From positions 100,316,001 to 100,380,000 of the forward strand of contig JANJGN010000021.1 in the NCBI GenBank assembly GCA_026770705.1: a stretch of DNA of 64,000 nt. Direction: 5' to 3'. The position numbers and the translations under genes are program-made. Under the pieces are notes generated by a model. That model made no database searches and was not told where the DNA came from. It was given only the letters and a program-made list of their open reading frames with translations. Below are positions 1,658 through 26,553 of the stretch, piece after piece. Within the stretch, counting starts at the first letter, position 1, and each line of letters starts with the position of its first letter. Origin of the DNA: Isurus oxyrinchus (lineage: Eukaryota).

Positions 1658-2008
1658 CGGTTACTGTTGGAAATATCACGGTAATCCAGAGACCGCAATC
1701 CCTCACCAAAGCCATGGGACAAACGGCGGACCTCGGCTGTACATATAAGGGTCCCGCTAGAGTCGGTGGCTACAAGTGGCACAGAGGCACCAAGCAGGGG
1801 AATGAAGTTTCCAACAGTACAGCGGAGTTCAAAGGTAGGGTGTTCGGGACAACTAAAGAGGATTTCAGTGAGAGGAGAAACGCGTCCATTCGAATAATCG
1901 ATCTGCAACCGGAGGACACCGGGTTCTATTTTTGCAAAGTGGAAATGATGGGAATCGGTGTAGCATATGGAGCCGGGACCACAGTGACCGTGATGCGTGG
2001 CAACGATG
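1658..2008 (+). CDS. NCR3: NKp30-like receptor gene A, VJ-type Ig domain exon
   Basis: tctgcag|...GATG|gtaagt, phase 1/1. VTVGNITVIQRPQSLTKAMGQTADLGCTYKGPARVGGYKWHRGTKQGNEVSNSTAEFKGRV...DTGFYFCKVEMMGIGVAYGAGTTVTV: V-set Cys/Trp/DxGxYxC plus J-like YGAGT. EVxNxTxEFxGR and CxVExxGxGV resemble human NKp30 as recalled. The leader exon was not found in the window. Confidence 0.85.
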
Positions 2009-2099
2009 GTAAGTTCGAGATGGTGGAGTTATTCTTACGAATCATGGGAGATCTTTCCAGTGACAAGCATTGTCCGTATAGGTAAATTATCCATTTGAT

Positions 2100-2365
2100 C
2101 ACATGGAAGTCCCAATCTGCGCCCTCCACCAGTTTGGAGAACACTACCAACTGCAAGTACCCCTCCAATTCACACGCCATCCTGACTTTGAACTATATCC
2201 CTTCATAGCCCCTGGGTCAAAATCCTATAACAACCGCCTAACAGCTCTTGTGCTGCGCATACGACAGATAGACGGCAGCGGTTCAAGAAAGCAGCCACCT
2301 TCACTACCTTCATAATGAGGCATATTGGGCTGGGCGATGAATGCTAGCCTTGTCAGTGGCGACTA
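2100..2365 (+). mobile_element. 3' fragment of a CR1/L2-group LINE (family with GGGCAATAAATGCTGGCC-type tail)
   Basis: Degenerate match to the copies at 48700-49030 and 17590-17995. Confidence 0.7.
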
Positions 2366-3135
2366 TTTTTAAAGGCAGATGTTACATATAATGTTGGTGA
2401 TGCGTCAGTCAAGTAATCAGCACAGTTATTGTGTGTAAGAGAGTGACTGGAGCCCCATCACCAAACCAGTATTGGGGACATGATATTTCAGCATGCCAGT
2501 ATTAAGGTACCCGATTAGAATCAGCCAGTTAACACATTCGTGATCAATTAGACCTCAGTGTCATCGGGTAAATGGAGATAGCGACAGCTGCAGCTCCGCA
2601 CGTGAGTATGAGCTAATGCATTACTCTCCAACAAAATGATTCGTCCCCGGAAGATACACATTAAATTGACCAGTTTAGGCAAGTCAAATATCAATACTTT
2701 ATTTCAGTCGTAAACGTCCCATAAATACGAGGTAAGGTTTTTTCCTTCGTGTGTTTGCGCTGGCGGATCTCCAGGGTGTACTGAATTATGGCGTGGAAGG
2801 GTGGCACCCCTTAACGGAACCCACCGATCCCCAGCCCCAAGCCCCCCTCCCCCTCTTCCCCAAACCGCCATCACAATGAAAGGGGAATTGGCACCAATGG
2901 TGCTCAGCGCCCTAGCTTTAAATTTCCTTAAACTTGAAGAATGGAAATCTCTCCAGCCGGCCGCCGGCGCCATTTTGCGTTGCCATGGGTGACTGAGTTT
3001 GAGAAACGCCAGTGATACATGTCAGTGAAGAGCCGCACGTCCCAGAGCATAGGAACCCGCGCTCCACAGACACACACACACACACACACACACTCGCTCT
3101 GCCCTTGACCGTTCTACCCGCGCATTTTCACACAG

Positions 3136-3264
3136 ATTCTGCAGGCAGCGGCGAAGGTGAGGCCAAGCTGGAGATCCCATCATCTGTCTTTGCAGTGGCC
3201 GCAGTGGTACCTCTCCTGATCATCGTTATAGTCATAACCGCTGTGAGGCGGCGCCGAAAAGCAG
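3136..3264 (+). CDS. NCR3: NKp30-like gene A, stalk plus uncharged transmembrane exon
   Basis: cacag|AT...GCAG|gtaaag, 129 nt, phase 1/1; DSAGSGEGEAKLEIPSSVFAVAAVVPLLIIVIVITAVRRRRKA. Confidence 0.85.
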
Positions 3265-3570
3265 GTAAAGCGGCCTCTTTGTGCATTTCCCTGCGAATGG
3301 CACATTCTTTGCTCGTTGTAAGGCGAGTGACGGGGCGGGAAAGCCGGCTGACAGGTCGGGTTCAATCCCACCTCCCCGGTTGATTGTAATTGAGGATGGG
3401 GCTGGGCAGAGCGCGGTATCAGTATTGCAGCCCACGTCCTCAGCTTCTCGACCCCACTGGGCCAGGATTAAGTTAAAAACTCCACTCGTGATCGATTATA
3501 GCTTTAAGAAGAAATTGGGAAATGAATCCAGCTCTTTAATATTTCTGTTGTCACCTTCCTTTCCTCACAG

Positions 3571-3592
3571 CCGCTCCTGAGCAGCCCACAAG
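3571..3592 (+). CDS. NCR3: NKp30-like gene A, 22-nt cytoplasmic micro-exon
   Basis: Pyrimidine tract ttcctttcctcacag|...AG|gtaact; AAPEQPT; phase 1/2. Confidence 0.75.
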
Positions 3593-3699
3593 GTAACTGT
3601 TCACACAGAACTACTTATTTTATGTCAACGAGGCCATTTTTTGGGTCCTTAGTGGTTTCTTGAATGTCTAAATTTCCCTGATGTCTCTTTTTGCTTCAG

Positions 3700-3734
3700 G
3701 TCAGGTCCACTCTACGCAGAGGTCCAAAATGCAG
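3700..3734 (+). CDS. NCR3: NKp30-like gene A, 35-nt cytoplasmic exon with YAEV
   Basis: ttttgcttcag|G...GCAG|gtgggt; RSGPLYAEVQNA; phase 2/1. Confidence 0.75.
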
Positions 3735-4668
3735 GTGGGTAACAGAAAGAAATGCACATAAGCCGCCACTGTTAATACACCTCAAACACTGGTGCCTTCT
3801 AATTGATAGCCTGGCTAAGTTTATTATTCATCCGTTATAATCTGGCACCCCACCAGTAACTAGAGCATGAAGACGTAAGATCAATTGGAAAAGGCCAGGA
3901 GGGAGATGTGGCGTTTTTTATTTTAAACTTGACAAGACCTGTAACGTGTTGCAAGCAGATTTAGTAGCAACTTTCCAAAGGAAGTTGGAAATGTACTTAA
4001 AAACCAGACAACATGCAGGTTACGTGGAAAGAACAGGTAAATGGGGCTAATTGGGCAGGGCTTTCAGAGACCCAGAACGGGCAGGTTGGACCGAATGGTC
4101 TCCTTCTGCCCTAAAGGATTTCATGCTTCAATAACGCGTCTTTTCTGAATTAGCCATTGAGCACCTCTTGGTCACGAAGACAAGTTGTAGTGCTAAAGTT
4201 TATGGCTAATCAAATACATTTATAAGATTTTTAAAAACTAATTTCTAATGAGAATTGCTGGAGGATATTGTAATGTGCATTTCGATGTTGAGATCGATAT
4301 TAGCCTAGCCGTCTGTCTATTCTGGTACGGGTGCTTGGCGCGCTCATATCACACTGCTTTGTCTGCTAGTTTAAAGCCAGCAGTTAAAATGTGGGCATTT
4401 ACATATGAGCTCTATATTGTATAAGGAAATATGGCGTAGTATTATATTATGTTGTAAAGTATTATGTTTTGCCTCATATTTATTGTATCGTTGCATTGCC
4501 GATTACGGTATGGCCTGTCATATCTATTGTTGCATTGTGTTCTACCTAATTTCAATCATGTTATGTTGCATGCTATAATATTATGCAACAGTGTATTAAG
4601 TTGCATTTTATTCACATATTCTCTATCCAAATAAAGTGTTTACTCCTGTTTACCCTTATATTTTATAG

Positions 4669-4709
4669 AGACCAATTGTTTTAGCTCTGAGAGCAAAAGA
4701 CCAAATCGG
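4669..4709 (+). CDS. NCR3: NKp30-like gene A, 41-nt cytoplasmic exon
   Basis: ttttatag|AG...CGG|gtaagt; ETNCFSSESKRPNR; phase 1/0 bridges the flanking exons in frame. Confidence 0.7.
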
Positions 4710-5359
4710 GTAAGTAGAGCAACTTATATTATTGCTAAACCTTGTGACCCGGTGTTTATTTTTCCAGTTAATTTTTCATGCAGAATTGTACTCTTCATAT
4801 TGGCTGTGCAAATCTAAAAACAAAAGAAACGAGGTTTGAGGGCTTGGACTATCCTCTCTGTGAATGCGAGTTAGAGTCTCAGCTTGTCACGCAGGCGTGA
4901 AACTTGATTGCGTCTCGCCCCAAAGTCAAGTTTAACGCACAGTGGCGGCAGGTTGATAAACAACAGCAACTAAGATATCGGAATTCAAGAGAGAGCCATC
5001 CGGGGGAATGTGTTACACGGAATGTTAGGGTTTTTGAACACTTAAATAAATAAGCAGAACACAACATAGACCTCAAAATTCTCAGCATTATACATTGCTG
5101 TGGCCAGACCAGACAAGGGCGGCAGTCATGTTTGACCAGGGATGGTGATGGTGCCTGGGAGATTAGCTGTAAGGTTTGATTCTGTGAGGAAGACTGTGTC
5201 AGGCCGTTGCTTGACTATCCTGTGAGACAGCTCTCCCAATGTTGGCACTAACCCCCAAATGTTAGTAAGGAGGGCTTGGCATGGCCGACAGTGCCGAGGG
5301 CGTTACAGGGTGGTCCCTCCGGTTTCATCCTTTTTTGTAACTTTATAGCTGTTTGATAC

Positions 5360-5568
5360 AACTGGGTGGCTTGCCAGGCAATTTCAGAGGGGATTAGTGA
5401 ACCAGATGGGTTTTTGTTTGGCAACAATTTCTTGGTCATCATCAGACTTTCTTATTGAATTCAATTTTCACGGTCTGCCGTGGTGGGATTCGAACCCAGC
5501 TCCCCAAAGAATAACCCCTGGGTCGGTGGATTGCTGGTCCAGTGTCAACACCACTATGCCACAGCAAT
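5360..5568 (-). mobile_element. tRNA-derived SINE, 5' part
   Basis: Reverse strand has GTGGCATAGTGG (A-box) and GGGTTCGAATCCC (B-box); same family as 9560-9905 and 47345-47745. Confidence 0.7.
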
Positions 5569-5759
5569 GTAGTGATTGGAGATAATATGAAAGAACGAAA
5601 ATATGGAAATTTGGTGTCAATGCAGGAAATACTGGATATACATATCAGGTCAGTCAGTGCCTGAAAAGGTAGACGCAGAATGACTGGTGAGATGCTCCCT
5701 TTCAACGGAGTGTTCTCCTGAATTCATTCCCAGGTGCTGATCTGAATAAGATTCTGAGA

Positions 5760-6080
5760 GAGGTTATAAAGATAGATGTTGAGTCTGGGCAGCCTAGAAA
5801 TTGGGGTCAAAATCTCCGAATAAGGAATAGCACTGAGACGAGGAAAGATTTCTCTGCGAGGATTGAGAATCATTGGACATCTCTAGCCCCGAATGTTCAG
5901 TCGTTGAGTATGTTGAAGATTGAGATGGAGAGATTATTCGGCTCTCGAGGCATCAAGGGACATGGGGACTGGGCGGGAAAGTGGAGATGACGCTGAGGAT
6001 AAGCTATGATCTCATTAAATAGCAAGGCAGGGGCGAAGGACCATATCCCCTTCTCCTCCTCCTGGATCTAATGTCCTGAC
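5760..6080 (+). mobile_element. Degenerate CR1 3' fragment in the last intron of gene A
   Basis: Similar to the CR1 3' ends at 15604-16040 and 30810-31530. Confidence 0.6.
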
Positions 6081-6472
6081 ACTGGGCCCACTGCTCGGGC
6101 GGATTCGCAAGTGTGGAGTGTGAAGTGTTTTCTAATATATGCATTTTAACATTGTACTTATAATTATTTGTTCTTTACGCCGACTAATTCCCATTCGTGC
6201 TATACGTTTTATTTAATGATAGAATCGTTGGTGCGCTGGAACATATTCAAAATAGCAGCAATATCGAGGGCAGTGTGGTCTATCCTATTTCACTGTACAA
6301 GGTTTGATAGGGAGACTTTTATGTTGTTTATTACGAATATTGAAGGTTTGAGATATGTTTTGTCGAAACTACACAAAACGCTTTAAGCTATGTTTTAGCC
6401 ACTGCACCGCCTCTGATGCCCAATTCGATTTACAATATTTCATTCAATACTCAAACACTTTAATCTCAATAG

Positions 6473-6580
6473 AGAGGGGGCGGAGATGAGATGCAATACG
6501 CCCAGCTGAATCTACAGGAGAGCCAACAAACAGAGCGCCCAGTAAATCAATTTGGGGTAGTGTACTCAACGGTCAAGTAA
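6473..6580 (+). CDS. NCR3: NKp30-like gene A, terminal exon with two ITIM-type motifs
   Basis: ctcaatag|AGA..., phase 0; RGGGDEMQYAQLNLQESQQTERPVNQFGVVYSTVK, stop at 6578-6580. Confidence 0.8.
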   Translation, partial: RGGGDEMQYAQLNLQESQQTERPVNQFGVVYSTVK

Positions 6581-6894
6581 GCAGAGCGGTTACCATTCAT
6601 CCCGAGGAGGGGTCGCCACCGGCTGACGAGGGGCATCATTTCTGCAGCGTTGGCCCGTAATTTCGTCCGGAAAGTCCGGAGTCCCTGGAGTTCCGGCAGA
6701 TCTTCAATGGCGGGTGGAGTGATCGGGAAAACCCTCCATGGAAGTTCCAGAGATATTTCTGGCCGTCCACATCACTGAGTGAGATTGGTCCCACGAGTGT
6801 TTTAACATGAGGCTCTGTGCTATTAGATGTGAATATTTGCCACGCTTGTGTGAAATGTATTTGCCTCCTATCTTAGGCAGTGTTACCCCGTTTA

Positions 6895-6900
6895 AATAAA
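6895..6900 (+). terminator. Candidate polyadenylation signal of gene A
   Basis: AATAAA about 315 nt after the stop codon. Confidence 0.4.
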
Positions 6901-8979
6901 CAGGTGATCATGGATCTTTGAAATATGGTGTCAACATTTTGAACGTTCACTGCCCAAATCAACCTAGTTTCATCGTTTAACTCCGTAAGCGTTCTCATCA
7001 TTCTAAACTGCATAGACATTTTCGCAATAGCAGTTCTCCCCAGTCGACCCATCCGGTTGAGCAGTTAATTTGTCGTTTTACTTTTTCTTTTAAGAGAAGT
7101 AAAATATATGTTCTAAGTTAAGTTTGATAAACGAGTAACTTCTGCTAGGAGTGTCTCCCTATTCCTGTGGTAACGTCGGCGAAACGCAGAAGAGCTTTGT
7201 TATTGCTAAAGCGGAGTTGCATTGAACTTGGATCGAAGTCACGACAGGAGGGTCGGGAGAACTAGCTTCCTAAGGAATGATACCTGCCGCGTGTGTAAAA
7301 CCGATTGATTGCTCTGCAGGGCGTCTCAAAACTCTTCATGCCCAAACACTTCGCCGCAGATAAAGTTAGGTGCTTGTCTCCAACCCCCAAGTGTTCTGCC
7401 TGAAGGGAAGTTCCAACGCTCCAACAGAATTCGCCGCAATTTCCTCGCACTGGCCTTAATGAAAATTAAATCCGCCGCTCAATATTGGTTGCGGTCTGAA
7501 AATCTCAGCTAACTCTTCCTTTGCCCTCCTCCCTGATGTAACGCCCATGCTGTAAACGCCAAGATCTACCCAGTAGTCAGTGTTGCTTTACAGGAACAGG
7601 CAACAAGAAATGTGCCTCAAACGTGGCTTCTGAAACGACAGATTAGATAAGTGAGTAGGCCGTCATTTTTGTAGGGACGGGTGGATTCTTGAGAACGTAA
7701 CTGCTCTCATTCCGTTGTGCTGTTTGCAGCCACCTCAAATGGACCCACGGCGTTTCAGCCGAGAGCCACTGCTCCCATCAGTATTGTGCTCCTTCAGGAT
7801 TGAGCGGTCAGATTAATTTATGTTCCAACTTCCAATCTCAAGAGTGAGGTTTGATCCACAAACCTGTACCTCCCGCGACCCTCACAACTGGTAGAAAAAG
7901 GTGACTTTCATCTCTGACTGAGTTGAGCCATGGGCAAGGAAATGGAAGAAAATTTCAACTTTCTATCTTAATGTAAGCACCTCTCTTGGCGCCTGTCACT
8001 GAAGAGCCCTGTATGACGCCTGGCATAAACTGAGTTGCACCTCCATTATTCTGTTTGTTCGTCCTATTGAGCGATATAGATATAGCCTAATGTGCCAGTG
8101 GTTATCTGAATGTATCAATAACGTGATATAACAGTTAACTTTATCTGCAAATATGTGTATAGATGTAGGTGCACATCACCAATCAGAAGCAAATACATTG
8201 GTATATTGCAGTCCCATCGGTCTGGAAATTGGGATTAGCGCTAGACGTCTGTATTTATAATCGCGTTGCATTAGTCTGCCCACCAATGTCATCCAACATG
8301 CTAACTTCCTCGCAGGGGTGGACTGCCGAGCGCCCGCCCACCCGCAATCCTTAACTAATGAATTTGCAACATTTGAAACATGCCCTTCCTCGAGACTCGA
8401 GTCCTTTGCTGGGTACCACTCCATTTCTGTCACATTCTGTGGAACTCCATGCAAACCTCCAATCAGAGTTTCACTTCCCTCCGCTCTCTCTGGCCCTCCC
8501 TGCCATCTTCCACTTCTCCTGTTGAGCTTTGAGCCTGTCCTTCGGTCTCCTTCACCCACCCTCTTTCAACAGCAGGCCACACCATTCTTAACTCAATAGT
8601 TAAATACTCGTTTAGTTGAGCTATATCTACGAAATGAAGGTGGAACAGAAAGCTGAAAAGCAGAGGGAATTCGACGGGGAAAAATCCCTCCCCCCCCGCC
8701 CCCTCCAGATGAGACTATACAAACCCAAAGGCTGAATAAAGAAAGCGCTGGGAAAAGAAAAAAATAAACGAAAAGTTGATTGAGTTAAATAGATTGGGTT
8801 GAGACGGTGGTGACAACAAGCTTGATGGTTTCATTTGTACAATATCAATATAAGATAACAGGAAACATTTCCCATTCTCCATTATAAGCCCCAAAACATA
8901 TAGTTGTGTGGAGAAGTATTGGAGAATTCATCATTAGCTTAATTAATAGCCTTTGACTGCTGTTAAATGTACAATGTGG

Positions 8980-9095
8980 GATAAAAACCGAAAATGTTAG
9001 AAAAACTCAGGCCTAACAGCATCTGTGGAGAGAAAACAAAACAGAGTTAACGTTTTGAGTCCATTTTCGAGTCCATATGAGTCTTCAGAACTTTT
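8980..9095 (-). mobile_element. Half copy of the palindromic Penelope-related short element
   Basis: AACAGCATCTGTGGAGAGAAAAC...AGAGTTAACGTTT matches the arms of the element at 19775-20000. Confidence 0.7.
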
Positions 9096-10659: not shown

Positions 10660-11393
10660 AAGAAGAGACATGTCGAATCTTTTCATCTTGCACTCATCAG
10701 AACACTTCACAAGAATACCAACATAAGGGGATACCAACAATTTATACTGTATGTGAAGAGAGTGCTGATAGGTTGGCAATTGAATTCTGAGTGGCAGATG
10801 CATTTCCATGAATAATGCAGCAGTGATGATGACTGAGAGTTAACTGGCAAACATTGTTTGAACTTGAAACTAGGCAGCTTGACCCTGATTGGTCAAGGCA
10901 TTGCCCTGAGGAATGAGTCAGCCAATAGTTGTTTAGCTGAAACAGGCACAATGTGTGCACATGCTTTTTTCCCTGTCTGCAATAACAGGGTCCTGTGTAT
11001 TAATATATGTAGCTTCCAGTACACACAAATATGCCACAGCATGAGCCCAACTGAAAATCTTAAATTGGTTGTCAGTGTAATTCTTAGCACACTGATGGTT
11101 AGTTAGCAAATGTTGTCCAATCACTGAACCACATCTAATGTTGTACACTGTGTTTTGAGTTTTGCGAGCATGGTCTGTACCTTGCCCATTGTGAACAGTG
11201 GCTGGGACATGCTGTTTGATATGATCCACCAGTCTTTGGGACGTGCAGCCTACATACCTAGCATCACACTGGCACAGAAATTCATATACCACGTTACTCA
11301 TTTGTGTGACAGGTGGAATGTCTTTCTGGCTTGACGGCAGCATCCTGTTGATGGCAAATACCACTCATGTTGCGACTGCACAATAGCAGCTTG
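10660..11393 (-). mobile_element. Penelope-like element, GIY-YIG endonuclease end and 3' terminal repeat
   Basis: ORF 10933-11364(-): SNVVYEFLCQCDARYVGCTSQRLVDHIKQH...IGQHL...LEATYI is a GIY-YIG motif with the CxC/H pattern of PLEs. Confidence 0.85.
10670..10705 (-). ncRNA. Minimal type I hammerhead ribozyme motif in the Penelope 3' terminal region
   Basis: Reverse strand GUGUU-CUGAUGA-GU(GCAAG)AU-GAAA-AGA-UUC-GACAU: complete core, helix I GUGUU/GACAU, near-palindromic helix III. Confidence 0.65.
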
Positions 11394-12180
11394 GACATAA
11401 GAACATAAGAACTAGAAGCAGGAGGAGGCAATTCAGCCCCTCGAGCCTGCCCCACCATTCAATACAGTCATAGCTGATCTCATTTCGGCCTCAACTCCAA
11501 TTTCCTGCCCTCTCCCCATAACCTTTCAACCCATTACTAATTAAAAATCTGTGTATTTCCTCCTTAAATTTATTCAGCGTCCCAGCATCCACTGCACTCT
11601 GAGGTAGTGAATTCCACAGATTCATGACCCATTGAGAAAAGTAATTCTTTCTCATCTCTGCTTTAAATCTACCACCCCTTAGCTTAAAACTATGGCCTTT
11701 CATTCTAGAATGCCCCACAAACGGAAACATCTACTCCGTATCTATTTTGTTTATCCCCTTTAGCATCTTCAAACCTCAATTAGATCTCCTCTCATCCTTC
11801 TAAACTCTAGCAAGTATAGGCCTAAACTGCTCAAAGCCTCCTCAAAAGGCAAGCCCCACATCTCTGGAATCAATCTAGTGAACCTCCTCTGAACCACCTC
11901 CAATGCAACTACGTCCTTCCTCAGCTAAGGGAACCAAAACTGTGCACAGTACCCCAGGTGCCATCTCACCAATGCCTTGTACAGTTGCAACAACACTTCC
12001 CTATTTTTACACTTTATTCCTTCAGCAATAAATGCCAAAATTTTATTTGCCTTCCTTATTACCTGCTGTACCTGCATACTAGCTTTCAGTGATTCATGCA
12101 CGAGGACACCCAGATCCCTCTGCACTGAAGCATTCTGAAGTTTCTCTCCATTTAAATAATAAGTCACCTTTTTATTCTTG
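11394..12180 (-). mobile_element. 5'-truncated CR1 LINE inserted in the Penelope element
   Basis: QRDLGVLVHESLK...LLQLYKALVRWHLGYCAQFW; 3' terminal (ACATAAGA)n microsatellite at the left end. Confidence 0.9.
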
Positions 12181-12526
12181 AAACAGCTAGCTTCACCTGT
12201 TGCTGAAGTTTTTGAGCTGCCTTGCCCTTCCAGTGTGATCTGAGGTAGACTGGGCACTTTTCAGGGCCAGAAGTGATGGCCTTTGGCTGGTCCATGAGTT
12301 TGCGTGACATACAGTGGATATGATCCAATCAGGGTGCCATTATCCTGTAGGGTGTCTTTGATGTGCCCTATTTCAGCATCACTTACATGGTGAGCAAATG
12401 GCTCGGGCCCTATTTATGAGGTTGTCAATAAGACGAATCTTAGAGTGTGTGGAACAGTAAGAATCCCAATGCGCATGTTGACCATTGATGGTAGGCTTGC
12501 AATAGACTGTGATAGAGAAAAATGGG
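12181..12526 (-). mobile_element. Penelope-like element, RT C-terminal part (continuation of 10660-11393)
   Basis: FSITVYCKPT...WDSYCSTHSKIRLIDNLINRARAICS resembles the post-RT region of PLEs. Confidence 0.8.
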
Positions 12527-12676
12527 AAGTTTATTGGAACAATGATCACAGTTACAGTAGTAAAACGTACTAGTTTCACAGATTTAGTGAGGAGAAACAG
12601 TTCCCCACAGGCAGCATCCATCGGTTACTGTGCAGCTCACAAGGGTCACTATGCCGAAAAGATAGAGGCTGGAGCG

Positions 12677-15603
12677 TCATCAATGTGGCTGGACGATCCA
12701 ACAGGGCCAACAGCAGATAAGGTGCAGCATACTTACACCTGGTCGCAGCTAGATGGTTCCATCCGTTCCGGGATAGACTTCCTGTTTGTGTCCCGGGCGT
12801 TCGCAGTCAGTACAACCTACGTACAACCTGTTTTTCTCTGACCACTGCCTCCTACTGGCCAACTGTCACTTACAGGAAGAGCAGAGGGTTGATAGAGGGA
12901 CATGGAAGCTGAACATGCAACTGCTTACCCTAGAAAACATTGAGGAGCTCAAGGGAGATTACAAAGGTTAGAGAACAGTGAAACCCCTCTTTGAGTCCCT
13001 GGCACACTGGTGGGAAGTGATCAAGGAGAAAATCAATAAGTTTTTCATCCTCAAAGGTGTCCAGAAAGCTGGAAAGGAACAGAGGGAAATGTCCTGACTC
13101 CAGAAAAACATGCAGAACCAGCTCCAGCTACAGTCAATGGGGGCCAACATCAAGGAGGAACTCCAAGAGGTGAAGAGCCAGCAAGCCTCACTCTTCACTT
13201 TGGAGGCCTCCAAGTTGATCTTCCAGTCCAGAGTCCGCTCCGTGGAGCAGGATGAGATGTGCTCACGTTTCTTCTTCCAAAAGGTATACAGAGAGAGCTC
13301 TGTGATCAGCAGTCTAAAGGAAGAAGATGGCTCAGTAAAGTCACTGCAGCCTGACATTCTGAGAATCAGCAAATCCTTTTATGCCGTATTGTATGATGTG
13401 AAGCTCACAGACAGTGCGGCCTCCCTGTCTTCCCTGTCCTCTATCACGGAGGTCTTAGTTGACAGCACACGGGAGAGTCTGGACAAACTGCTAACTCCTG
13501 ATGAACTGACTAAGGCCCTTGAGTGCTTCAAGAAGAGTAAAACTCCCAGAAGCGACGGCTTATTGATGGAGTTGTATTTGGCTCCGTGGGGCTGGATTGG
13601 CCCAGACCTGTTAGAAGTGTATGAGAGTATGCTTCTGGCCGGAAGCATATCAGAATTCATGTGGAAAGGCATCATCACCCTCATCTATAAGCAGAAGGAG
13701 GAAAAGGGGGAAATTAGAAACTGGCGACCCATCTCAATGTTGGATGTGGACTATAAGATTCTGCCCAAGGTCATCACCAATTGGGTCAGGCCTGCTCTGG
13801 AGTTGGTGATCCATCCTGACCAGACCTGCAATGTGCCCAGCAGGAAGATCTCTGACAGTCTTGCACTCTCAGGGATACAATTGCCTATGTGCAGTACGGG
13901 TGTGGACACCTGGCTCATCAGCCTAGACCAGGAGAAGGCCTGTAACAGAATATCGCACACCTACATGGTGGATATGCTGTCCAAAATGGGGTTTGGGGAC
14001 GGAAGGAATCTGCAACTGGATCCAATTGCTCTACACTAACATCAGTAGCACAGTCTCAATCAATGGGTAGGAATTGGAAAGCTTTCCAATTAAATCTGGA
14101 GTCAGGCAGGGCTGCCCTCTCTCCCCTGTCCTGCTTGTTTGCTGCATAGAACCCTTTTCTGAGTCCATCAGGAAGGATCTGGGCATAAGAGGAGTGATGA
14201 TCCCAGGCAGTGGAGGCATTCAGGACAAAACCTCCCTGTACATGGATGATGTTGCCATCTTCTGCTTGGATCTGCTGTCGGTGCGCAGACTGATCCACAT
14301 CGATGACCAGTTTGAACTGGCCTCGGGAGCCAAAGTAAATTGTGGGAAGAGTGAGGCCATGTTCTTTGGAACTGGGCTGACCAATCCTTTGTCCCCTTCA
14401 GGGCTGAAGGCCTGAAGGTGCTGGGGATATGGTTCAGAGGGATCAGAGCATGCATTAGAATCAGGAAGGAGCAAGTGGCTATATATGAAAAGGAAAACTG
14501 GGCATGTGGCAGTGATGCTCCCTCTCCATTGTAGGTAAGAACCTGGTCATCAGGCATGAGGCACTCTTGCTGTTGCTGTAAGTGGTGCAGGTCTGGCCCA
14601 TTCCACACTCCTGCATGATGACGATCACCCGAGCCTTCTTTCACTTTATCTGGGGGTCGAAAATGGATTGTGTCTGCAGGGACGCAATGTAAAAGCCTCT
14701 AGGTACGTGGGGAAAAAACATACCCAACATCGCCCTCATACTGATGGCCACATTTGTGTGTGCGTGCATCAAGCTGTGCATAGACCTTCAGTATGCAACA
14801 CAAAGTGCCATTACATGCTGAGGTTCTACCTGTCCCTGTTGTTGCGAAGGATGGGTCTGGCCACACTGCCGTGGAACACTCCAAGTAGTTGGACCATGCC
14901 GTACCACCTGTCCCTCGTGGAAACATTTTTGCAGAGAAACACTTTTGACCAAGTCCATCAGGCAGTGGTCTGCATGAAACATCTTAGTGGCGCTGCAGGA
15001 AAAGGAGATGGTGGATCCTGTCAGATGGTTCCCCGAGCAGACTGTCTAAGTTATTTGGCAGAATATCTCGTCGTCAGAACCTTCCAACAAGCACCAAGAT
15101 GTAGCTTGGCTGGTGGTGAGAAAGGCCCTCCCCGTCAGATCCTTCCAACACGCCAGGAGTCTCACCCCCTCTACATGTTGCCCTCGAGGTGGCTGTGGTG
15201 GGGACGAGACCATTGTTCACCTCCTTGTGGAATCTGTCTTTGCAAAGAAGGCCAGAGAGAGATGCAATGGTTTTTGTCGAGGTTCATCTCGAGCAGTTCT
15301 GTGACACAGGACTCTGTGCTCTACGGGCTGTTCCCAGGGACACACACCGAGACAAACATCAACTGCAGCTGGAGGATCATCAGCTCGGTGAAAGACGCTT
15401 TTTGGTCTGCCTGAAACTTGTTGGTTTTCCAGCGCAAAGAGTTGTCCCCAACCAAGTGTTGCAGACTGGCACATTCCAAGGTCCAGGACTACGTGCTGAG
15501 GGACACACTAAAGCTTGGGGCAGCCGCCACAAAGGCGCAATGGGGAAAAGTCGCTGTCTAAGACCTTCCTAAGACAGTGCACCGAGGGGCTGGGAACTGT
15601 AAG
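12677..15603 (+). mobile_element. Tx1-clade non-LTR retrotransposon ORF2, frameshifted and 5'-truncated
   Basis: APE end (YTW...IDFLFVS...FSDHC), RT motifs (NWRPISMLDVDYKI, LDQEKA, SGVRQGCPLSP, YMDD), C-terminal CPRGGCGGDETIVHLL zinc knuckle. Confidence 0.9.
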
Positions 15604-16060: not shown

Positions 16061-17094
16061 CATGGAATATAAGCATCTCTGGCGAGGCAAGCATTTAATT
16101 CTCCAACCTAATTGCCCTTGAGAGGCCGCCTCCCTGAGCTGCTTCTGCCTAGGAAGCTGTCTGAGAGTTGAAGAATTTTGATCCAGCGATAGTGAAGGAA
16201 TGCAGATATATTTGCAAGTCAGGATAATATGTGATTTGGAGGGGAAGTTAAAGGAGGCCGCGAGTTTGGAACATGCTGCCCAAGATTAGATCCGCGATTG
16301 TACAGCGCCTGACACACTTTCTGACCCGTCCAAATTCAAGATTTTCCTAATTTCTTGCTCCCATGTCAAAATATTGGAGCTCAAACGTTTGATTTCTACT
16401 CGCTTTAGCATGTCTTCAATTCAGGTTACAGTTCTGCGCGCATGATTTACAAACTGCTTCTTCACTCCGCTTCAGTCAGTTCGATTTTCAGTACTGATCA
16501 ACATGAGGTAGAAACCGTGTGCTATTTTGCACATTAAACACCTGAGTTTCATTCACCTGCCTTTGCACTAACACTGAAGTTTGGACATTATTTCGAATTT
16601 GCCAGGGAGGCGGGGCATAGCGCCGTCGCTGAGTATTTTTGACAGGCTGCATTCAGGGCGCTACAAATAATTTGCGAAGAATTCAAATTATCAGACGGAG
16701 AAAACGCATTCGTATTTGCGGTAGAAGCTAGCATTTCGCAATCGCTTTATCCGAGCTGCCAAAAATAGCCGCCCAAGTTTGCTGTTCGTTGCATCACTTT
16801 CGAATAGCACAAATTCTGCATGGGATGTGGGGGGTCCCAAGTCCGCCTAGAACAAGACCGCTGGAACCACCGGAAAATGGGGTGGACTGGAGTTATTTCG
16901 TTGCGGGCGTCAGCCAGGACACAGCAAGATAATTATCCCAAGGAGCCAGCTAACTTAATGTCAATGCGAGCAGTTCCAAAATGTTTCCAAATCACGACAG
17001 GATTAGACTCACATATCAACCGAGTCGCTGCTAAAATAGCTGTGGGGCCGTTTTATTCAAAGGGCGCTCACACGGCGCAGCAGAAGGATGCTCA

Positions 17095-17180
17095 CACTTC
17101 CCCCTCCTCTCCACCCCCACAACCCCCCCCACCCCCCCCCCCCGCACCCCCCCCCGCACCCCCCCCCGCACCCCCCCCAA
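17095..17180. repeat. C-rich tract (G-quadruplex potential on the - strand) about 240 bp upstream of the gene B ATG
   Basis: Repeated runs of 8 or more C separated by A or GCA. Confidence 0.85.
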
Positions 17181-17422
17181 CAGCCTGAACAAAACATGAA
17201 GCGTCTCAGCTTCTGTGACAAACTCGGTGTGAAACAGTTCTCAGGATGTGACGTGCATTGCAAAGCTTCTTTTCAAATATTTCAGAAACCCGCCGGTACA
17301 GAGGCCCAAGAGAGGAAACCTGGCCATTTGTGAAGCATGTTTTCCGGCCGTTACATTTAGGCTTACGAAAGGTTTCTCAACCACCAACCTCTCGACCTCC
17401 TTCGTTCGCGAAAACGGGGCTG

Positions 17423-17465
17423 ATGGATTCCAGACGCATACTGTGGGCGCTGGCCCTGTTCTCTG
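17423..17465 (+). CDS. NCR3: NKp30-like receptor gene B, leader exon
   Basis: MDSRRILWALALFS then G|gtaagt; signal peptide, phase 1. Confidence 0.85.
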
Positions 17466-17995: not shown

Positions 17996-18998
17996 TTGGG
18001 AATAAAGTGAATTGATAGTTTTGTCGGAGTTAATTGGGAATGGATGTTGGCTAGGACACCGGAGGCGCCTCCGGTCCTCATAAAATGGAACTAGTGAGAC
18101 CGACTTGAAGCCACTGAGCACACAGAGGTCCATACACGCTCTCGTAGACAGAACCGTATCTCCGCCGCTCACCATTCCTTCAGCGCCGCACTGAGATATG
18201 CGCCTAAATTATATTAAATGATGCTGGAGGGAGGCTCCAATCCATAACCTTGACACAGAGGCGAGGATAGAAAAAACTGAGGTTATAAATATATGATAGC
18301 CGTGAAACTGGCTGACTTTGTTATATCCTCTAAATGCGGCGCCGGGAAATATTCAATCATGCTTGCTGGGTTCAGTTAGTCAACCAGAATGGTGCAAATT
18401 TGAGCCTGGGCGTGAAACATCGCCCGAGGAGAACGTAGAAATGAATCTGGAGTGAAGGGCCTCAGGGTAACAACGATTTTATCCGATGGAAGAAAGTTCG
18501 AGAAGGCCCGGGGGAATCCGCCCCTAGAATTTCCTTTCTGTGTCCGTCCACAGGACGTGTTCGGCCCAGGCGGTGAACTAGAATATCGGCCACAATAGGA
18601 GGAATCGCCAAGGCTCCCCACCCCGCCCCCCCCCCCCCCCCCCCACCCCCAGGGACTCCTGTGGGCCTGTGCGCTGCGATTTTCAGCCGAATAAAGCGAG
18701 TTGATAGAAACGGAAATTGCAACGGAAATTTACCTGTAAGCTCTCCGCTCGCTGCCTCTCCGGCCTTAAGCGGGGACTCGGGTCTGGGAAGAATGCACCC
18801 AAACGAGGTCGAGTTTTCTCTGTTTGGAATCTCTCTTCCTGGCTTTGGGGATTAGCGCAATCTCCCTGAGGTCTTCACTAACGGTTTCCAGGACGTGTTT
18901 ACTTGTGCCTTTTATTCCCCCAATGTTCATTTTTCATCAGATGAAACAAGGTGTGGGGATGTTGTGCTTCAGAAATTCTCCATTTCGTGTATTGACAG

Positions 18999-19337
18999 GA
19001 ATTGCTGCAGAAAACATCAGAGTTACCCAGACCCCGCTCTTCATTAATGCCACCGAGGGGCAGTCGGTGCTGCTGAACTGCACGTACGAAGGGCCCTCGG
19101 GAGTCGGTTTCTTCAAGTGGCACAAAAATACCAAAAACGGGCTTGAAGTCACCGAGCAAGCTGCGGAATTCAGAGGGCGAGTGTCTCGGGCAAGCGCTGA
19201 GGATTTTAAAGAAAAGAGGGACGCCTCCATTAATATAACAAACTTGAGGCATTACGATTCAGGGACATATTACTGCGAAGTGGAACTTATGAGATTTAAC
19301 ATAACATATGGAGCAGGAACAACACTTAACGTAGCGC
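18999..19337 (+). CDS. NCR3: NKp30-like gene B, VJ-type Ig domain exon
   Basis: attgacag|GA...GCGC|gtgagt, phase 1/1; IAAENIRVTQTPLFINATEGQSVLLNCTYEGPSGVGFFKWHKNTKNGLEVTEQAAEFRGRV...DSGTYYCEVELMRFNITYGAGTTLNV; gapless with gene A, 54/113 identities by hand count. Confidence 0.85.
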
Positions 19338-19774: not shown

Positions 19775-20000
19775 TAAAACAGAAAATGGTAGAAAAACTC
19801 AAGGTCTAACAGCATCTGTGGGGAGGAAAAAAAAAGAGTTAACGTTTCAAGTCTGACTTCTTCAGAGCTCTGAACAAGAGTCATACGGACTCGAAACGTT
19901 AACTCTGTTTTTCTCTCCACAGATGCTGTTAGGCCTGCTGAGTTTTTCCAGCATTTTCTGTTTTTATTTCAGATTTCCAGCATCCGCAGTATTTTGCTTT
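19775..20000. mobile_element. Palindromic Penelope-related short element with back-to-back hammerhead-like motifs
   Basis: Inverted arms around central CAGAGCTCTG; each arm reads CTGAA(G/C)A-stem-GAAACGTT-AACTCT. Confidence 0.75.
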
Positions 20001-20567
20001 CAGTTATAGTTATGGCAGTTTGCGCACTAGTAACAGATAGAGTGGATCAACTGCATGACAAGACAGAGGTAGAACTGAAGAAGGGAATACATTTCTCACA
20101 GAACATGCAAAGAACCAGCACCTTTAACTTATTTACCGCTCCGTCATAAACTTCACCGCTCTGCCATTCTCCACCTCCTTCCATTTAACACACCCATGCC
20201 TACACAGATCCACAGGCTGTGGCACAAACACAGCTAACTCCTCCGCCATAGAATTCTGAAAATAGGCAATCTATCAAGAGTTTATAATTGTTAAATGTTT
20301 TGAGACGATGACATGAATAATTAGTTGCTCCTGACCACTTAAAACAAAAAATAAGCAGCTAAGATCACAATCCTGATTAATAGGTGATATTATTTTAAAA
20401 TAACTAGCACGACTAAACCTGCAGTTCACTTGGTCCATTAGAAATGGATATCATTATATGGAATTGAGGTGCTTGGACTTAGGCACAGTGACTATCCGTC
20501 ATCTATGGAGGTAGGGACAGAGCAAGTGCTGTATTTGGGTAAGAGCCTCTTGTCTTCTTCTGTCTAG

Positions 20568-20696
20568 GCAAGCTCCTGGTAGAACAGACTGCAGAAAAAC
20601 CCAATGAGTCAACGACATGTGATGCAATCACGAACACCAGTGCCAGAGCATTGGGCGCTTTCATTCTGTTTTTCACTTGTTACCACCTGATGAAAG
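20568..20696 (+). CDS. NCR3: NKp30-like gene B, stalk plus Arg-containing transmembrane exon
   Basis: tcttcttctgtctag|GC...AAAG|gtaact, 129 nt (same length as gene A), phase 1/1; RKLLVEQTAEKPNESTTCDAITNTSARALGAFILFFTCYHLMK. Confidence 0.75.
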
Positions 20697-20799
20697 GTAA
20701 CTATTATACAACGTCCTGATAGATTCGTAAATTAGGCACATTCATGCAAATTGGAACTAATGTAGCGACACGTGTTTGTTTTTTAACCTTTTCATGGCC

Positions 20800-21495
20800 A
20801 GTACTTGATGGCCATCACTAATGGGCCTCAAGGAGGTGGCCGAGTGCCACCTTCAAACCCCACTGCAGCACATCTGATGTAGGTTCACCTGCAGTTTTGT
20901 TAGTTACAGGATTTTAGCCCCAGTGACACTGAAGGAACGGCCATATAGTTTGAAGTCAGAAAGGTGTGTGAATTGGAGTGGGAATCTCAGGGAGCGCTCT
21001 TCCCATGCTTTCACTGCCCTTGTCCTTCTCCAACGGTAGTGGCTCTGGGTTTGGAAGATGCTTCAAAATAACCCTTGGTGATTTGTTGTAGTGCACCTAA
21101 AGTGGACAGGCTTTGGGCAGCCAATGGCTGAGTTACTCGCTGCAGATTTCCCAGCCTCTGACCTGCTCTTGTAGCCACAGTATTTATATGGCAGCTCCAG
21201 TTCAGTTTCTGGTTACTGGTAACCCCCAGGATGTTGATAGTGGGGGATTCGGCGATGGTAATGCCCTTGAATGCTTAGGGGAGAAGGTGAAATTCTCTTT
21301 TGTAGGAGATGGTCATTGCTTGACACTAGTGCAGGGTGACTTATCAGTCCAAGCCCAGACGCTGTTTAGTTCTTGCTGCATAGGGACACGGTATCTGAGG
21401 AGACGTGCATGGTACTGAACACTGCAATCATCGGTGAACATCCCCATTTTTGACCTTATGATAGAGGGAATGTCATTGATGAAGGAACTGAAAAA
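20800..21495 (-). mobile_element. CR1/L2-group LINE fragment
   Basis: Reverse complement similar to 41676-42610. Confidence 0.75.
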
Positions 21496-21567
21496 TGATT
21501 ATTCTCTCTAAAGCTTACCATGTGGCCATATACAAACCCTTACTTGACTCTGTCATTTTTTTTATAG

Positions 21568-21589
21568 TTCGTGGCCTCCAATGTTCAAG
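21568..21589 (+). CDS. NCR3: NKp30-like gene B, 22-nt cytoplasmic micro-exon 1
   Basis: ttttttatag|TT...AG|gttggt; VRGLQCS; phase 1/2, same size and phase as gene A 3571-3592. Confidence 0.65.
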
Positions 21590-21674
21590 GTTGGTAAATC
21601 TAAGAAAAAACTTTTTATTTTCAATATTATTTTTTATACTGTTCTGTAAAGTACATTTTCTGGTTGTGTTTCAG

Positions 21675-21712
21675 AAGAAACGACTGGATTTCCGACGATA
21701 CCTCTTTAGCAC
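21675..21712 (+). CDS. NCR3: NKp30-like gene B, 38-nt cytoplasmic exon
   Basis: gtttcag|A...C|gtaagc; RRNDWISDDTSLA; phase 2/1. Confidence 0.65.
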
Positions 21713-22527
21713 GTAAGCTCAAACTGAATTGTTTTAATACGATGAACACGTTTGTGTGATGTGTTGTGAAGTCATCCAGGTGACATGAGTGAATTAATGT
21801 TTTCAAGGGTGAGTGCACTATTGACCTTCCTGCATAATTAATGGAGGAACAAACTTGCTTTGAACCCAGGCAATTCCATAACCAATAATGCGATGTGACA
21901 CTTAAATATAATTAGCAGAAATGTAAGGCTATTGTTGTTTACATTAGTAGCCTGAAATAAGCCGGTTAACATTAAACATTTATTTATTTAATACCAGACA
22001 TTTGCAGATGAGGTTGAGTTGGTTGGTTATATAAACAGAACTGGTAACTTTCGGTTAACACTGTTGGATTGCTGTAAAATCCAACCAAGAAAAGATTATA
22101 ATGTGTATAGCAAAATTGTAAGCCCTTCTCCAACACCTTCATTTCAACAGCACTCCAGCCTGTAGACTCAGTCAATATCGAAGTGCAGGTTATATTTTTT
22201 AATTTAATTGGTGTGTATTTAGTTCTTCAATTCCGTGATATTGTTTTCCCTTTCACTTTTGATTCCAAATCAATATTGCACCTTACAATATCTTGCATTT
22301 TAGTAGCGAATATTAGTGATATTTATCTAAATCGTTGACTGCGAAGATAATCATTTAGACATTATTTTAAAATAGCACACTTTAATAGGAAAGTACATAA
22401 ATATTCTTGTTGATTATCACTGTTGAAAGGACATAAGAGGCGCATTTAATGTTAATCTCATCTCATGGTATCAAATGTATTAGCTTTGTTTGAATCAAAG
22501 GATTATTTTCGATTTTTATATTCGCAG

Positions 22528-22549
22528 AGCCAGACCCACAAGTACAAAG
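22528..22549 (+). CDS. NCR3: NKp30-like gene B, 22-nt cytoplasmic micro-exon 2
   Basis: ttcgcag|AG...AG|gttagt; QPDPQVQ; phase 1/2. Confidence 0.65.
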
Positions 22550-22644
22550 GTTAGTTTGTGGCTAGGGCACTAACAAGTCCTATTTTTAAATTTTAAATTA
22601 TGGTTTAATTTTAATTCATAGCGATGTGGTTTGTTTTTTTCCAG

Positions 22645-22693
22645 AAGTTTAGTGGGTAACAATTTTTCTGCCTCTGATGAAATTAATCCACTG
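22645..22693 (+). CDS. NCR3: NKp30-like gene B, 49-nt cytoplasmic exon
   Basis: ttttttccag|A...CTG|gtgagt; RSLVGNNFSASDEINPL; phase 2/0. Confidence 0.65.
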
Positions 22694-23297
22694 GTGAGTA
22701 ATGCACATCAAAAGCATTGAACCCGATCCTCAGTGATGCAGTTGGTTTAGAGAGTGCATGAACTGCCCGGTATCCTACTGTGTTTCCTGTACTGGTGTTG
22801 TCTGTGTTGAACTAACTGGCCTCACTTTGGGTCTTAATTGTGTGGTGCAATTAGTCTTTATATTACCGAATCGAGGCTAAGAAGGGCGGGGTAGAAGGGT
22901 AAAAAAAAAACAGACTTGATTATACCCCTTCCCCCTCTCTGTACCCCCGCTTACTATCCAATAACCACTGCGGAAAATGTAAGCGTGAGTAGAACTTTGG
23001 GCTAATTTTAACCTAACATTGTTTTTAATGCAGCGAATTATTAGGGCCTGGAGTGCACTTGGGAATGTGTGGTGGAGTTAACCCAGCCAAGGATTTCTAA
23101 AAGGAATGGGTTAAATGCCCGAAAAGAAAGAAATATTGCAATGGGGGAAGAGCGGGCCGTGAGACTTAGTTAAGTGGCTCTGGTAAAGAACCAGCACAAA
23201 CACGATGGCCCGAATGGCCTCCTTAGGTGCTGCATCCATTCCAAGATTCATCGCTTCCGGTCTGCCTGAAAACAGCCCCGGAACACTATTCTAATAA

Positions 23298-23612
23298 AAG
23301 CAAAATACTGCGGATGCTGGAGATCTGAAATAAAATCAGAAAGTGATGGGTGGGTGGGTGGGGGGAGGGACTGGGCGGGGGGAGAGGGACTGGCCGGCGG
23401 AGGTGGGGGGGGGGGGGGGGGGGGGGGGGGTGGTAAATAAAAAAAACTGAGCAGGTCTGATGACATCCGTAGGGTAAAACCAGAGTTGACGTTTTGAGTC
23501 CAGTCTGACTTAATCTGACATAATATTGGACTCGAAAGGTTAACTCTGTTTCTCTCTCCACAGATGCAGACAGGCCTGCTGAGTTTTTCCAGCATTTTCT
23601 GTTTTTATTTTA
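23298..23612. mobile_element. Palindromic Penelope-related short element interrupted by a G-rich tract
   Basis: Same arms as 19775-20000 (AAAGCAAAATACTGCGGATGCTGG ... CCTGCTGAGTTTTTCCAGCATTTTCTG); G runs at 23348-23432. Confidence 0.75.
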
Positions 23613-26466
23613 CTACGACCGTCCGCTTTCTCTTCCCTAGCCAATTTCATGCCCACACCACCAGTGCCCCTTTATTACCATGGGCTTTAACATCGCTAAC
23701 AAGGCTATTATGTGGCACTCTTTTAAACGCCATTTGAAAGTCCGCAAACACAAGATCGTCATCAACCCGCTCTGTTACTTCATCAGAAACTTCAGTCAAG
23801 TAATTCAGGGCCATTCAAGGACGATTTTACTTTAAAATATCAACACTGACTTTCATTTATTAGCCAATACTTTCCCAAATGCCAGTTAATTTTGTCACTG
23901 ATTATTATCTGTAAAATACTCTCCATCTAGAATACTAAAACCAATTGCCCCGAATGCTGGAAATCTGAAATAAAAAAAACGGGACAGTGGTGGGAATGCT
24001 CAACAGGTCGGGCAGAACCTGTGGAGAGAGAAACGGAGTTAGCGTTTCAGTTTGTGGCCATTCCGAAGAACAGGAGAAAGGTGCAGATGCAAGATGTTTT
24101 AAACAAGTGAAAGGGGGAAGAATAGGATAAAAGGAGCTATCTACTGTTCGGCCCGTCAAATTAATACCTTTTTAGTTTAACCGGTCATCCATGAATTCAA
24201 AAAGTCAGAGCCCATCCCAAGTGGTGCGTGGCCTTTTTTCCTGTCGCTCAACCGCAGGGCGCTCCAATTGTCTTTGAGAAGCGGAACACGAAAGCCACAA
24301 AGCTGAGTGATGGGGCCGATGAATTTTGGACATGGCAAGTGAATCAAAACAAGCAATGTTGCACGGGCACCTCCCCCACGCCCCCCCCCCCCCCCCCCCA
24401 CCACCCATACCATTTCTCCCACCACCCCCCAGCACCGCCCCCCCCCCCCCACCCCCCACCACCACTGCAGGCCCGATATTCAACTCCATTAACTTCAATG
24501 GAATCATTCTCTGGCTCCACCCCCATATCTAAGGAGAATTCGAAAATTGTGTTCAAATTTCAACGCTTATTTTCTTCAATAACACAGGATGCATCCCATC
24601 CACACCTGGGGACTTCTGTATGTTGAGCACTGCCACTCCTTTAAGTACCCCATCTTTATTTGTATCCAGCCTAATTGCGCCACTACCTCGATCTTTACTG
24701 TTACATCGGTAGCATCTTCATATCAAGACAGATACTAAGTATTCCTTTAGTGCCTTTAATAAAACTCCATCAGTTCCCTTAAGAATATTGCTTTCATACT
24801 CCCAAGTCAGCCATATTCCTCCATTGCCAGCTTTTCCTCCATATGTATAAGGACTTCTGCGTTCCTGATACGTAAGCCGCGCATCTATTCTCATGATCAC
24901 TTCCCCCCACTTATTCCATTTCTTAGGTTTCGTCTGCACTTTCTATGTCCAGCTTGGAGCTCCACTTTATTATACATCCCGTAATTGACTTTTACCTGCA
25001 TCATTTCTGACTTCATTCGTTTGGGGATGGGATTTGAACATTTGCAGGGTGACAAAACAGGCGGAAGCTCGGCTTCTCACGACCGATATTCTGTTCCAGT
25101 GAAGTCAATGGGACTGAATTTCGGGCTGGGGCTGGGTCTGGGGGAGGTGGGCGGGGAATGGGGGCGGGTGGCTGTTATATCACAGCCGGGGACACATGCA
25201 AAGTAGCTTCTTCTGCATCGCTGCCCACGTCCAAGATTCACCACCCCACCGCCTCATTCTCTACCTTTGTTGCTTCTCTGCTACCTTTCTCAAAAGGCAA
25301 TGAGAGCGCCTCCTGGTGAGTGGCAAGAAAAAGTCACGTACCCCTACTTGGGATTGACTCAATTGTTTTGAGTCAGTAATTCACTGTTCAAAGGTATTCA
25401 TTTGATTTAATAAAGCTCCATTTTACCTGTTTCGAGTTGCAAGGCAATGGGAGAACTTGTTGCTCATTAGGCAGCGTCCCTGCCCTTGGTCCCACTCCTG
25501 GTCACGGAAAGACCTTTCAAGGCGCTGTTCAAACAGCCTGCTAATCGTTCCACCACATCTCCACTATTGCTCAAAGGGAAAAGGTTGTGGGTGATGTGTG
25601 TGAAGATATGAAACAAACAACGAAGTCAAGACGCTAGAAATTTTATGTCATTGTAGAAGTGCCAACATTTAAAAAAAAACATTGGCATGAAATCCCTTTA
25701 GCAGACCTGTCCAGCTCATTCATGTTTAAGTCTTCGGCGTCTCCCTAAAGTAGCAAGCACAGAAGTTGAATAGGATTGTTTTAAAAACTTGCATGACACC
25801 TGGGGACCTCTACCTATGCCAAAATCGAGAACCGTTGCATTTTAAATAGGATTTCAATTTCGTCGAACTTAGTACACGATCGAAATCATGTCTTAAGTTG
25901 ACGCTCAACTTGTGTATTTGTATGAAATGTCTGGTAAATAACTTGCCAGCTGTGTTTCGTCATTCTCTTAATCTTCTTATTTTTAAACGTTTTAAACGTT
26001 TGCCTTCATCGAGTTCTATGGTGAATTTTCTAACACGTTCTGTTGCGTTAACATGAACAGGATGAGAAGATTATTCGAATCACATGCAACAGTGAAGAAG
26101 AGACTGCATAAAAAGATGGACCTTGAGCCGCATACAAGCAGTTCCCGTTTAAAAAGCGTCGCTCGTGTGAAGTGTAAAAACCGTGCTATTCGCGCACGTG
26201 ACTCCTGCAAACTATCCTGCAACACATCTGTTTTGGCGCGATTGGAAGTGCCTCCGGTAAAATGGATCACGATGTTTAACTATAAAATATGTAAATAACG
26301 ATTTGTTAAAATTTCAATGAAGATTCAGTGAAGGTATTAATAAAACCAAATATGCATACGCTTATTCTCGTAAATAGCACCTTGATCACAGACGGCAATG
26401 TTATAATCTACTAAAATTAAAAATATTATTGTTTTGGGCCCTATTCTTTCTTTTGATCCATCCAAG

Positions 26467-26553
26467 GAAATCCCTAGTACGGAATCAAACGCGACAGCAA
26501 ATCCCCCTGAGAGATCAGAAGCAGCATTAACCTCCCAGACTAATAACCGTTGA
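26467..26553 (+). CDS. NCR3: NKp30-like gene B, candidate terminal exon
   Basis: ctattctttcttttgatccatccaag|GAA, phase 0; EIPSTESNATANPPERSEAALTSQTNNR-stop. Best phase-0 candidate found, but with no motif support. Confidence 0.4.
   Translation, partial: EIPSTESNATANPPERSEAALTSQTNNR

Follow-up and report, generated by a model that had tools for sequence, protein, structure and literature searches.

Do sharks balance activation and inhibition with paired receptors built on the NKp30 scaffold? The question is raised by a stretch of 64,000 nucleotides from Isurus oxyrinchus (contig JANJGN010000021.1, positions 100,316,001 to 100,380,000; hereafter the window), in which two neighbouring genes, here called gene A and gene B, each encode an NKp30-type receptor with a single V domain. 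A first-pass annotation of this DNA had described the two as paralogues with gapless V domains about 48% identical, transmembrane (TM) exons of equal length, a 22-nt micro-exon after the TM exon and opposite signalling ends, and had proposed that they form an inhibitory and activating pair. Our analysis keeps much of that description and argues against the pair. We consider it probable that A and B are two neighbouring members of the shark NCR3 multigene family linked to the major histocompatibility complex (MHC), that they come from two old lineages, and that gene A is inhibitory and gene B either adaptor-coupled or poor in signalling.

V-domain homology and phylogeny place both genes in the NCR3/NKp30 family, in agreement with the first-pass identification. 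The plus strand of the window holds two open V-set exons, at 1658-2008 in gene A (Pfam V-set E 1.4e-14) and 18999-19337 in gene B (E 7.6e-14), and both domains keep the canonical cysteine pair, the tryptophan and a germline J-like YGAGTT motif. In each gene this motif, of the G-x-G-T type, lies within one single open exon, a membership feature of the NCR3/NKp30 family. The best solved single-domain match of both is human NKp30 (PDB 3NOI, 3PV6), with E 1.8e-13 against 5e-10 for SIRP in the case of gene A and a marginal lead of E 1.4e-10 against 6e-10 for an immunoglobulin (Ig) light chain in the case of gene B. In a maximum-likelihood tree that covers 50 V domains, with SIRP as the sole outgroup, A and B form a clade with all NCR3-annotated sequences from lizard, frogs, lungfish, bichir, sturgeon and sharks (support 100/100), and within it they fall in a cartilaginous-fish group (89/92) that also holds the nurse-shark NCR3 entries QTT61898 and QTT61904. 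This V-domain tree does not show whether either gene is a one-to-one orthologue of NKp30, and no MHC genes were seen within the 64-kb window. The genes also share an exon architecture: both TM exons (3136-3264 and 20568-20696) measure 129 nt with AG/GT borders and phase 1 in and out, as first described, and both genes contain 22-nt micro-exons of phase 1/2. Equal TM-exon length is weak evidence of paralogy, since the TM exons of orthologues differ in length and the 129-nt equality is not conserved; on homology, the argument for paralogy is carried by the V domains.

Gene A is very probably an inhibitory-type receptor of this family, an assignment well supported by homology. Exons were searched singly, and spliced models were joined by phase-aware translation only for reading. 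The chain 1658-2008, 3136-3264, 3571-3592, 3700-3734, 4669-4709 and 6473-6580 runs in a single frame to ...DEMQYAQLNLQESQQTERPVNQFGVVYSTVK and a stop, and an AATAAA poly(A) signal follows the terminal exon at 6895. Support for these exons comes from annotated orthologues in four sharks, namely Heterodontus francisci (XP_067865395), the catshark Scyliorhinus canicula (first half of XP_038671257), the bamboo shark Chiloscyllium plagiosum (XP_043533718) and the nurse shark, the last as a published NCR3 cDNA (QTT61898). The V exon (VJ-type, phase 1 in and out) is 67-74% identical to those of the orthologues. The stalk and TM exon encodes a strongly hydrophobic segment free of charge, FAVAAVVPLLIIVIVITAV, followed by RRRRK (Kyte-Doolittle 19-residue mean 3.08), and is matched in tblastn by orthologues including S. 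canicula XP_038671257 (P0007). Next stand the micro-exon AAPEQPT at 3571-3592 (phase 1 to 2), comparable to ATLQQPE in Chiloscyllium, AARELPA in Scyliorhinus and ATRQQPA in Heterodontus; a 35-nt exon, RSGPLYAEVQNA, at 3700-3734; and a 41-nt exon, ETNCFSSESKRPNR, at 4669-4709, which is required because without it position 6473 would be entered out of frame at an immediate stop. In C. plagiosum XP_043533718 the corresponding pieces read ATLQQPE, SSDPLYAEMHEG, ETNYVRSECRRTNR and GDDGVQYAEINV...TMVYAKV. The terminal coding exon (6473-6580) carries MQYAQL and, 22 residues on, VVYSTVK before the stop; it is 69% identical to S. canicula XP_038671257 (P0007) in tblastn and is matched by other orthologues too.

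The tail encoded by these exons contains three tyrosines, in PLYAEV, MQYAQL and VVYSTV, and this count and the uncharged TM both stand as first read. As motifs of the immunoreceptor tyrosine-based inhibitory (ITIM) type, the three fare differently. VVYSTV alone fits the strict consensus ([S/I/V/L]-x-Y-x-x-[I/V/L]), which inhibitory tails usually carry twice at a distance of 20-30 residues. MQYAQL has the YAQL core of the KIR motif but methionine at position -2, and PLYAEV, the first, is not a strict ITIM and has lost its tyrosine in the orthologues of S. canicula (RLCAEV) and H. francisci (PINAEI). Both membrane-distal tyrosines (QYAxL/I and V/LYxxV) are kept in every gene A orthologue whose model reaches the last exon. 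Their spacing in gene A resembles that of tandem-ITIM receptors such as the KIR and PD-1 tails, and once phosphorylated the motifs would be expected to recruit the tandem-SH2 phosphatases SHP-1/2 in the same manner.

Gene B required a new exon model. Its orthologue in H. francisci, annotated as XP_067865360-69, has a V domain 74-75% identical, and its leader, V, TM and four tail exons correspond to those found here. The leader exon of gene B, MDSRRILWALALFS plus 1 nt at 17423-17465, has a GT donor and matches the Heterodontus leader MDSRCIVWVLILFSG at 11/15 residues. The V exon (VJ-type, 18999-19337) is 72-75% identical to H. francisci XP_067865360-69 and 63% to the S. canicula V2, and the stalk and TM exon (20568-20696) is 51% and 57% identical to its H. 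francisci and S. canicula counterparts. The tail is built of a repeated unit in which a short motif exon follows a micro-exon of 22 nt, and two such units are recognisable, at 21568-21712 and 22528-22693. The first consists of the micro-exon VRGLQCS at 21568-21589 (RGLQCS against RGLQCQ in Heterodontus) and a 38-nt exon, RRNDWISDDTSLA, at 21675-21712, which matches Heterodontus proteins in tblastn and has serine at the tyrosine position of NDWIYDDIPLA. The second consists of the micro-exon QPDPQVQ at 22528-22549, comparable to Heterodontus PEPVGLQ by position and composition, and a 49-nt exon, RSLVGNNFSASDEINPL, at 22645-22693, in which FSASDEINPL has serine at the tyrosine position of Heterodontus FSNYDEINPA (tblastn, 7/9 identical). 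All four tail exons have AG/GT borders.

The first-pass model of gene B had the V exon, the TM exon and both exons of the second unit, 22528-22549 and 22645-22693; it passed over 21568-21589 and 21675-21712, and thus took the second micro-exon for the one that follows the TM exon. It remained in frame by accident, because the two skipped exons total 60 nt. We set the V start at 18999, add the leader and drop the proposed last exon, 26467-26553 (EIPSTESNATANPPERSEAALTSQTNNR then stop), which is open and has an AG acceptor but shows no homology to any orthologue tail and has no RNA support. In addition, annotated isoforms of the Heterodontus orthologue omit the TM exon and join V straight to the RGLQCQ micro-exon, and the equivalent skip in the window would stay in frame.

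What signal gene B could deliver depends on its TM segment and its tail. The TM exon contains an arginine (TSARALGAFILFF; codon 20645-20647 in TSARALGAFILFFTCYHLMK) at a position that we take to be that of Arg143 in human NKp30. Arg143 of NKp30 pairs with CD3zeta/FcRgamma, and human NKp30 likewise has its arginine near the outer TM end. The catshark orthologue keeps the residue (TSARILGVF, against TSARALGAF in the window). Gene B cannot signal through ITIM-like tyrosines in the model given here, because both retained motif exons carry serine where Heterodontus has tyrosine; the first-pass report of a TM arginine and a tail free of tyrosine holds for all recognisable tail exons, and the tail contains no tyrosine under any of three candidate 3′ ends (the exon at 26061-26111 discussed below, exon 26467-26553, or read-through at the 22693 donor). 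We infer both the 3′ end and the expression of gene B. Transcribed independently of gene A, gene B would most likely either couple through its arginine to an adaptor with an acidic TM, of the CD3zeta, FcRgamma or DAP12 type, and be activating, or be poor in signalling. An activating role through such an adaptor is plausible, though unproven, and we put this part of the reading forward tentatively.

Several observations weigh against the reading of gene B offered here. The arginine is replaced by glycine in the Heterodontus orthologue (ISAGALGTL), and it stands no more than about 4-5 residues inside the outer end of the hydrophobic stretch, a depth at which it could snorkel without a partner. 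The modelled tail, at about 55-75 residues, is long for a classical activating receptor. A search of sequencing runs for RNA from the locus found none, and no splice junction could be read. The contigs recovered from those runs over 20560-26559 are genomic DNA, about 97% identical to the window and continuous across introns, and in them the gene B tail exons differ at 5/131 nt (3 non-synonymous), about the intron rate of 3%. Tail-exon divergence at about the rate of the introns hints, weakly, at little constraint on the tail.

The same observations bear on an alternative that we regard as unlikely, though a serious rival to the activating reading, namely that gene B is decaying or dead for signalling, its tail exons relics of an inhibitory ancestor and its arginine a chance residue at the membrane boundary. 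Besides the serines of the motif exons and the near-neutral divergence of the tail, which includes a change of tryptophan to arginine, it can call on the weak hydrophobicity of the TM segment (Kyte-Doolittle mean 1.23) and on the lack of further tail units: neither tblastn nor motif scans of the window, including the DNA downstream of 22693, turned up a counterpart of the third and fourth units of Heterodontus (TIYHDI and VHSDI) or of its terminal exons. Against decay, all seven splice-site pairs of gene B are intact, and its leader, V and TM exons contain no stop or frameshift, with the conserved V-domain residues and J motif in place. The catshark shares the arginine, and the related genome keeps the TM and tail exons open and free of indels. 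Its listed exon differences include at least one non-synonymous (P to S) and one synonymous change in the TM exon, two synonymous changes in the first micro-exon, W to R in 21675-21712, Q to R in 22528-22549 and S to C in 22645-22693; none of those listed falls at the arginine codon. The DNA runs (X1, X3 and X4) differ from the window by about 3% over exons and introns, with small indels, and may represent another individual, a deep haplotype or a sister species; X3 and X4 seem to be a single data set deposited under two entries, and a further run, X7, contains only repeats.

Adaptor-coupled or signalling-poor, gene B differs from its Heterodontus orthologue in the type of its predicted signalling end. 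The Heterodontus proteins share with gene B the leader, a TM exon equivalent to 129 nt, the micro-exon and the motif units, but have glycine for arginine and a tyrosine-rich tail, with IYDDI, SNYDEI, TIYHDI and a degenerate VHSDI unit followed by a long end or an alternative LELYSTV end, LELYSTVKKKTT. A search with this tail matched Heterodontus alone. The gene B lineage may therefore have switched signalling type between orthologues, from a tyrosine- or ITIM-type receptor with a neutral TM, as in Heterodontus, to the TM arginine and serine-bearing motif exons seen here, with the other units gone, although we consider such a switch doubtful. The catshark model ends soon after the TM exon by apparent read-through, which would give a short-tailed form, and as a fused model it is not reliable on this point.

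A 51-nt stretch at 26061-26111 may be a relic of the terminal ITIM exon, and this identification is speculative. It reads in frame as DEKIIRITCNSEEETA (EKI) then stop, and in another frame as FESHATVKKR against LELYSTVKKK in Heterodontus, with AATAAA at 26339. The tblastn match is not significant (E = 27), and we keep the stretch as a lead only.

The first-pass proposal was of a true paired-receptor system made up of A and B, with the same or related ligands and a missing-self-like balance between them. In its favour, the genes adjoin on the same strand, have a common architecture and carry opposite predicted signalling ends, and the tandem order appears to be conserved in the catshark. There, the 469-residue Gnomon model XP_038671257 fuses the A and B orthologues through an implausible linker; the fusion is probably an annotation artefact, and it suggests that the order A then B is conserved. 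In Heterodontus the two orthologues lie on one chromosome with neighbouring accession numbers. Against the proposal stand the V domains themselves. A and B are identical at 53/112 positions (47.3%) with no internal gap, as the first count had it, and classical pairs such as KIR, Ly49 and SIRP differ in having near-identical ectodomains that arose by recent duplication or conversion. The activating member of a classical pair has a basic TM residue and no tyrosine motif in its tail. Separate orthologues of each gene, moreover, occur in other orders of sharks: gene A groups with Heterodontus, catshark, bamboo-shark and nurse-shark QTT61898 sequences (100/96), and gene B with Heterodontus and catshark (100/98), in a clade that contains no published cDNA. 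A tree forced to make A and B exclusive sisters is 89.6 log-likelihood units worse and is rejected (p-AU 1.8e-5). Because each gene has separate orthologues and their sisterhood is rejected, the V-domain phylogeny makes A and B old lineages, already distinct before several shark orders diverged, and speaks against a recent duplication. The Heterodontus orthologue of gene B is, in addition, itself of the tyrosine or ITIM type. The ligands of A and B are probably different, and we judge a paired system decidedly unlikely.

Least likely of all, and very improbable in our view, is that gene B still signals through tyrosine by way of a diverged or further-downstream terminal exon of the LELYSTV or MFYKG type, as the tyrosine-bearing terminal exons of its Heterodontus orthologue and its own predicted 3′ end might allow: the weak match to the PGTEHNIPAQPQQMF end at 39315-39359 has E = 4 and is judged to be chance, the candidate relic has histidine or a shifted frame at the tyrosine position, the only ITIM-like matches on the plus strand after the last exon of the corrected model, 22645-22693, lie at 24791, 25809 and 27924 and have no homology support, and plus-strand motif scans and tblastn gave no ITIM-like exon assignable to gene B.

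A 2021 paper on nurse-shark NCR3 (Kinlein et al., Immunogenetics 73:333) reportedly describes eight divergent MHC-linked subtypes. The nurse-shark family, like A and B, is multigene and has a single germline VJ Ig domain. Nurse-shark QTT61898, which groups with gene A, resembles it in its neutral TM and PLYA-type tyrosine tail and has a V domain 65% identical, and QTT61904 has lysine in the TM and no tail, so that a charged-TM type exists in the NCR3 family; for the gene B lineage the nurse shark yielded no member. A third shark NCR3 lineage pairs an arginine TM and short tail in C. plagiosum (XP_043533794) with a tyrosine tail in H. francisci (XP_067865381), and in frogs, sturgeon and lungfish many NCR3-like proteins belong to one signalling type or the other. 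Human NKp30, which binds B7H6, differs from both genes in being single-copy with a short tail, gene A having a neutral TM and an ITIM tail and gene B a long tail built of micro-exons. Families that contain both ITIM-tail and charged-TM members, as shark NCR3 does, include KIR2DL/DS, Ly49, SIRPalpha/beta and the teleost NITR. The mix of ITIM-type and charged-TM members is thus not new for shark NCR3: the nurse-shark entries already show both types in public data. A full-text literature search on shark NKp30 and ITIM gave nothing useful.

The surroundings of the two genes are rich in repeats. A gene A leader exon was sought in 1-1657 and not found; its probable place is before the start of the window. 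Positions 365-1065, just upstream of the gene A V exon, are occupied by a minisatellite with a 38-bp unit (18.4 copies, 90% matches), which is probably inside the leader-V intron because no gene A leader was found in the window. Between the genes, 11000-15600 is occupied by reverse-transcriptase-like open reading frames on both strands, fragments of long interspersed nuclear elements, and no other gene was seen there. The gene B introns contain very high-copy repeats (19775-20000, 20960-21420 and 23160-24160), with a summed contig depth of 10^5-10^6 in the DNA runs and many inverted and "goes back" joints. Around gene B, spurious poly-Pro and poly-Gly open reading frames arise from long C/G homopolymer and CCN-rich tracts (17090-17190, 18620-18650, 23390-23430 and 24380-24470). 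A run of N at about 50050-50250, an assembly gap or masked stretch, appears as X in the translations, and an Rfam scan of 1-30000 returned no family at gathering score.

By itself the locus establishes no new principle, since families that mix ITIM and charged-TM members are standard. Through it the shark NCR3 family gains two clearly bounded genes, the exon model of one of them now corrected, and the result can serve the annotation of shark MHC-linked receptor clusters. The most interesting point left is that orthologues within the gene B lineage differ in signalling type. If the switch is real, gene B would represent the conversion of an inhibitory receptor into an activating one, at a stage when the relic tail exons can still be spliced, in the oldest group of vertebrates with NKp30. 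The two genes also supply constructs for asking whether NKp30-type receptors had both activating and inhibitory modes in early jawed vertebrates, and they point to a great age of the NCR3 lineages and to a signalling type that can vary from one orthologue to another.

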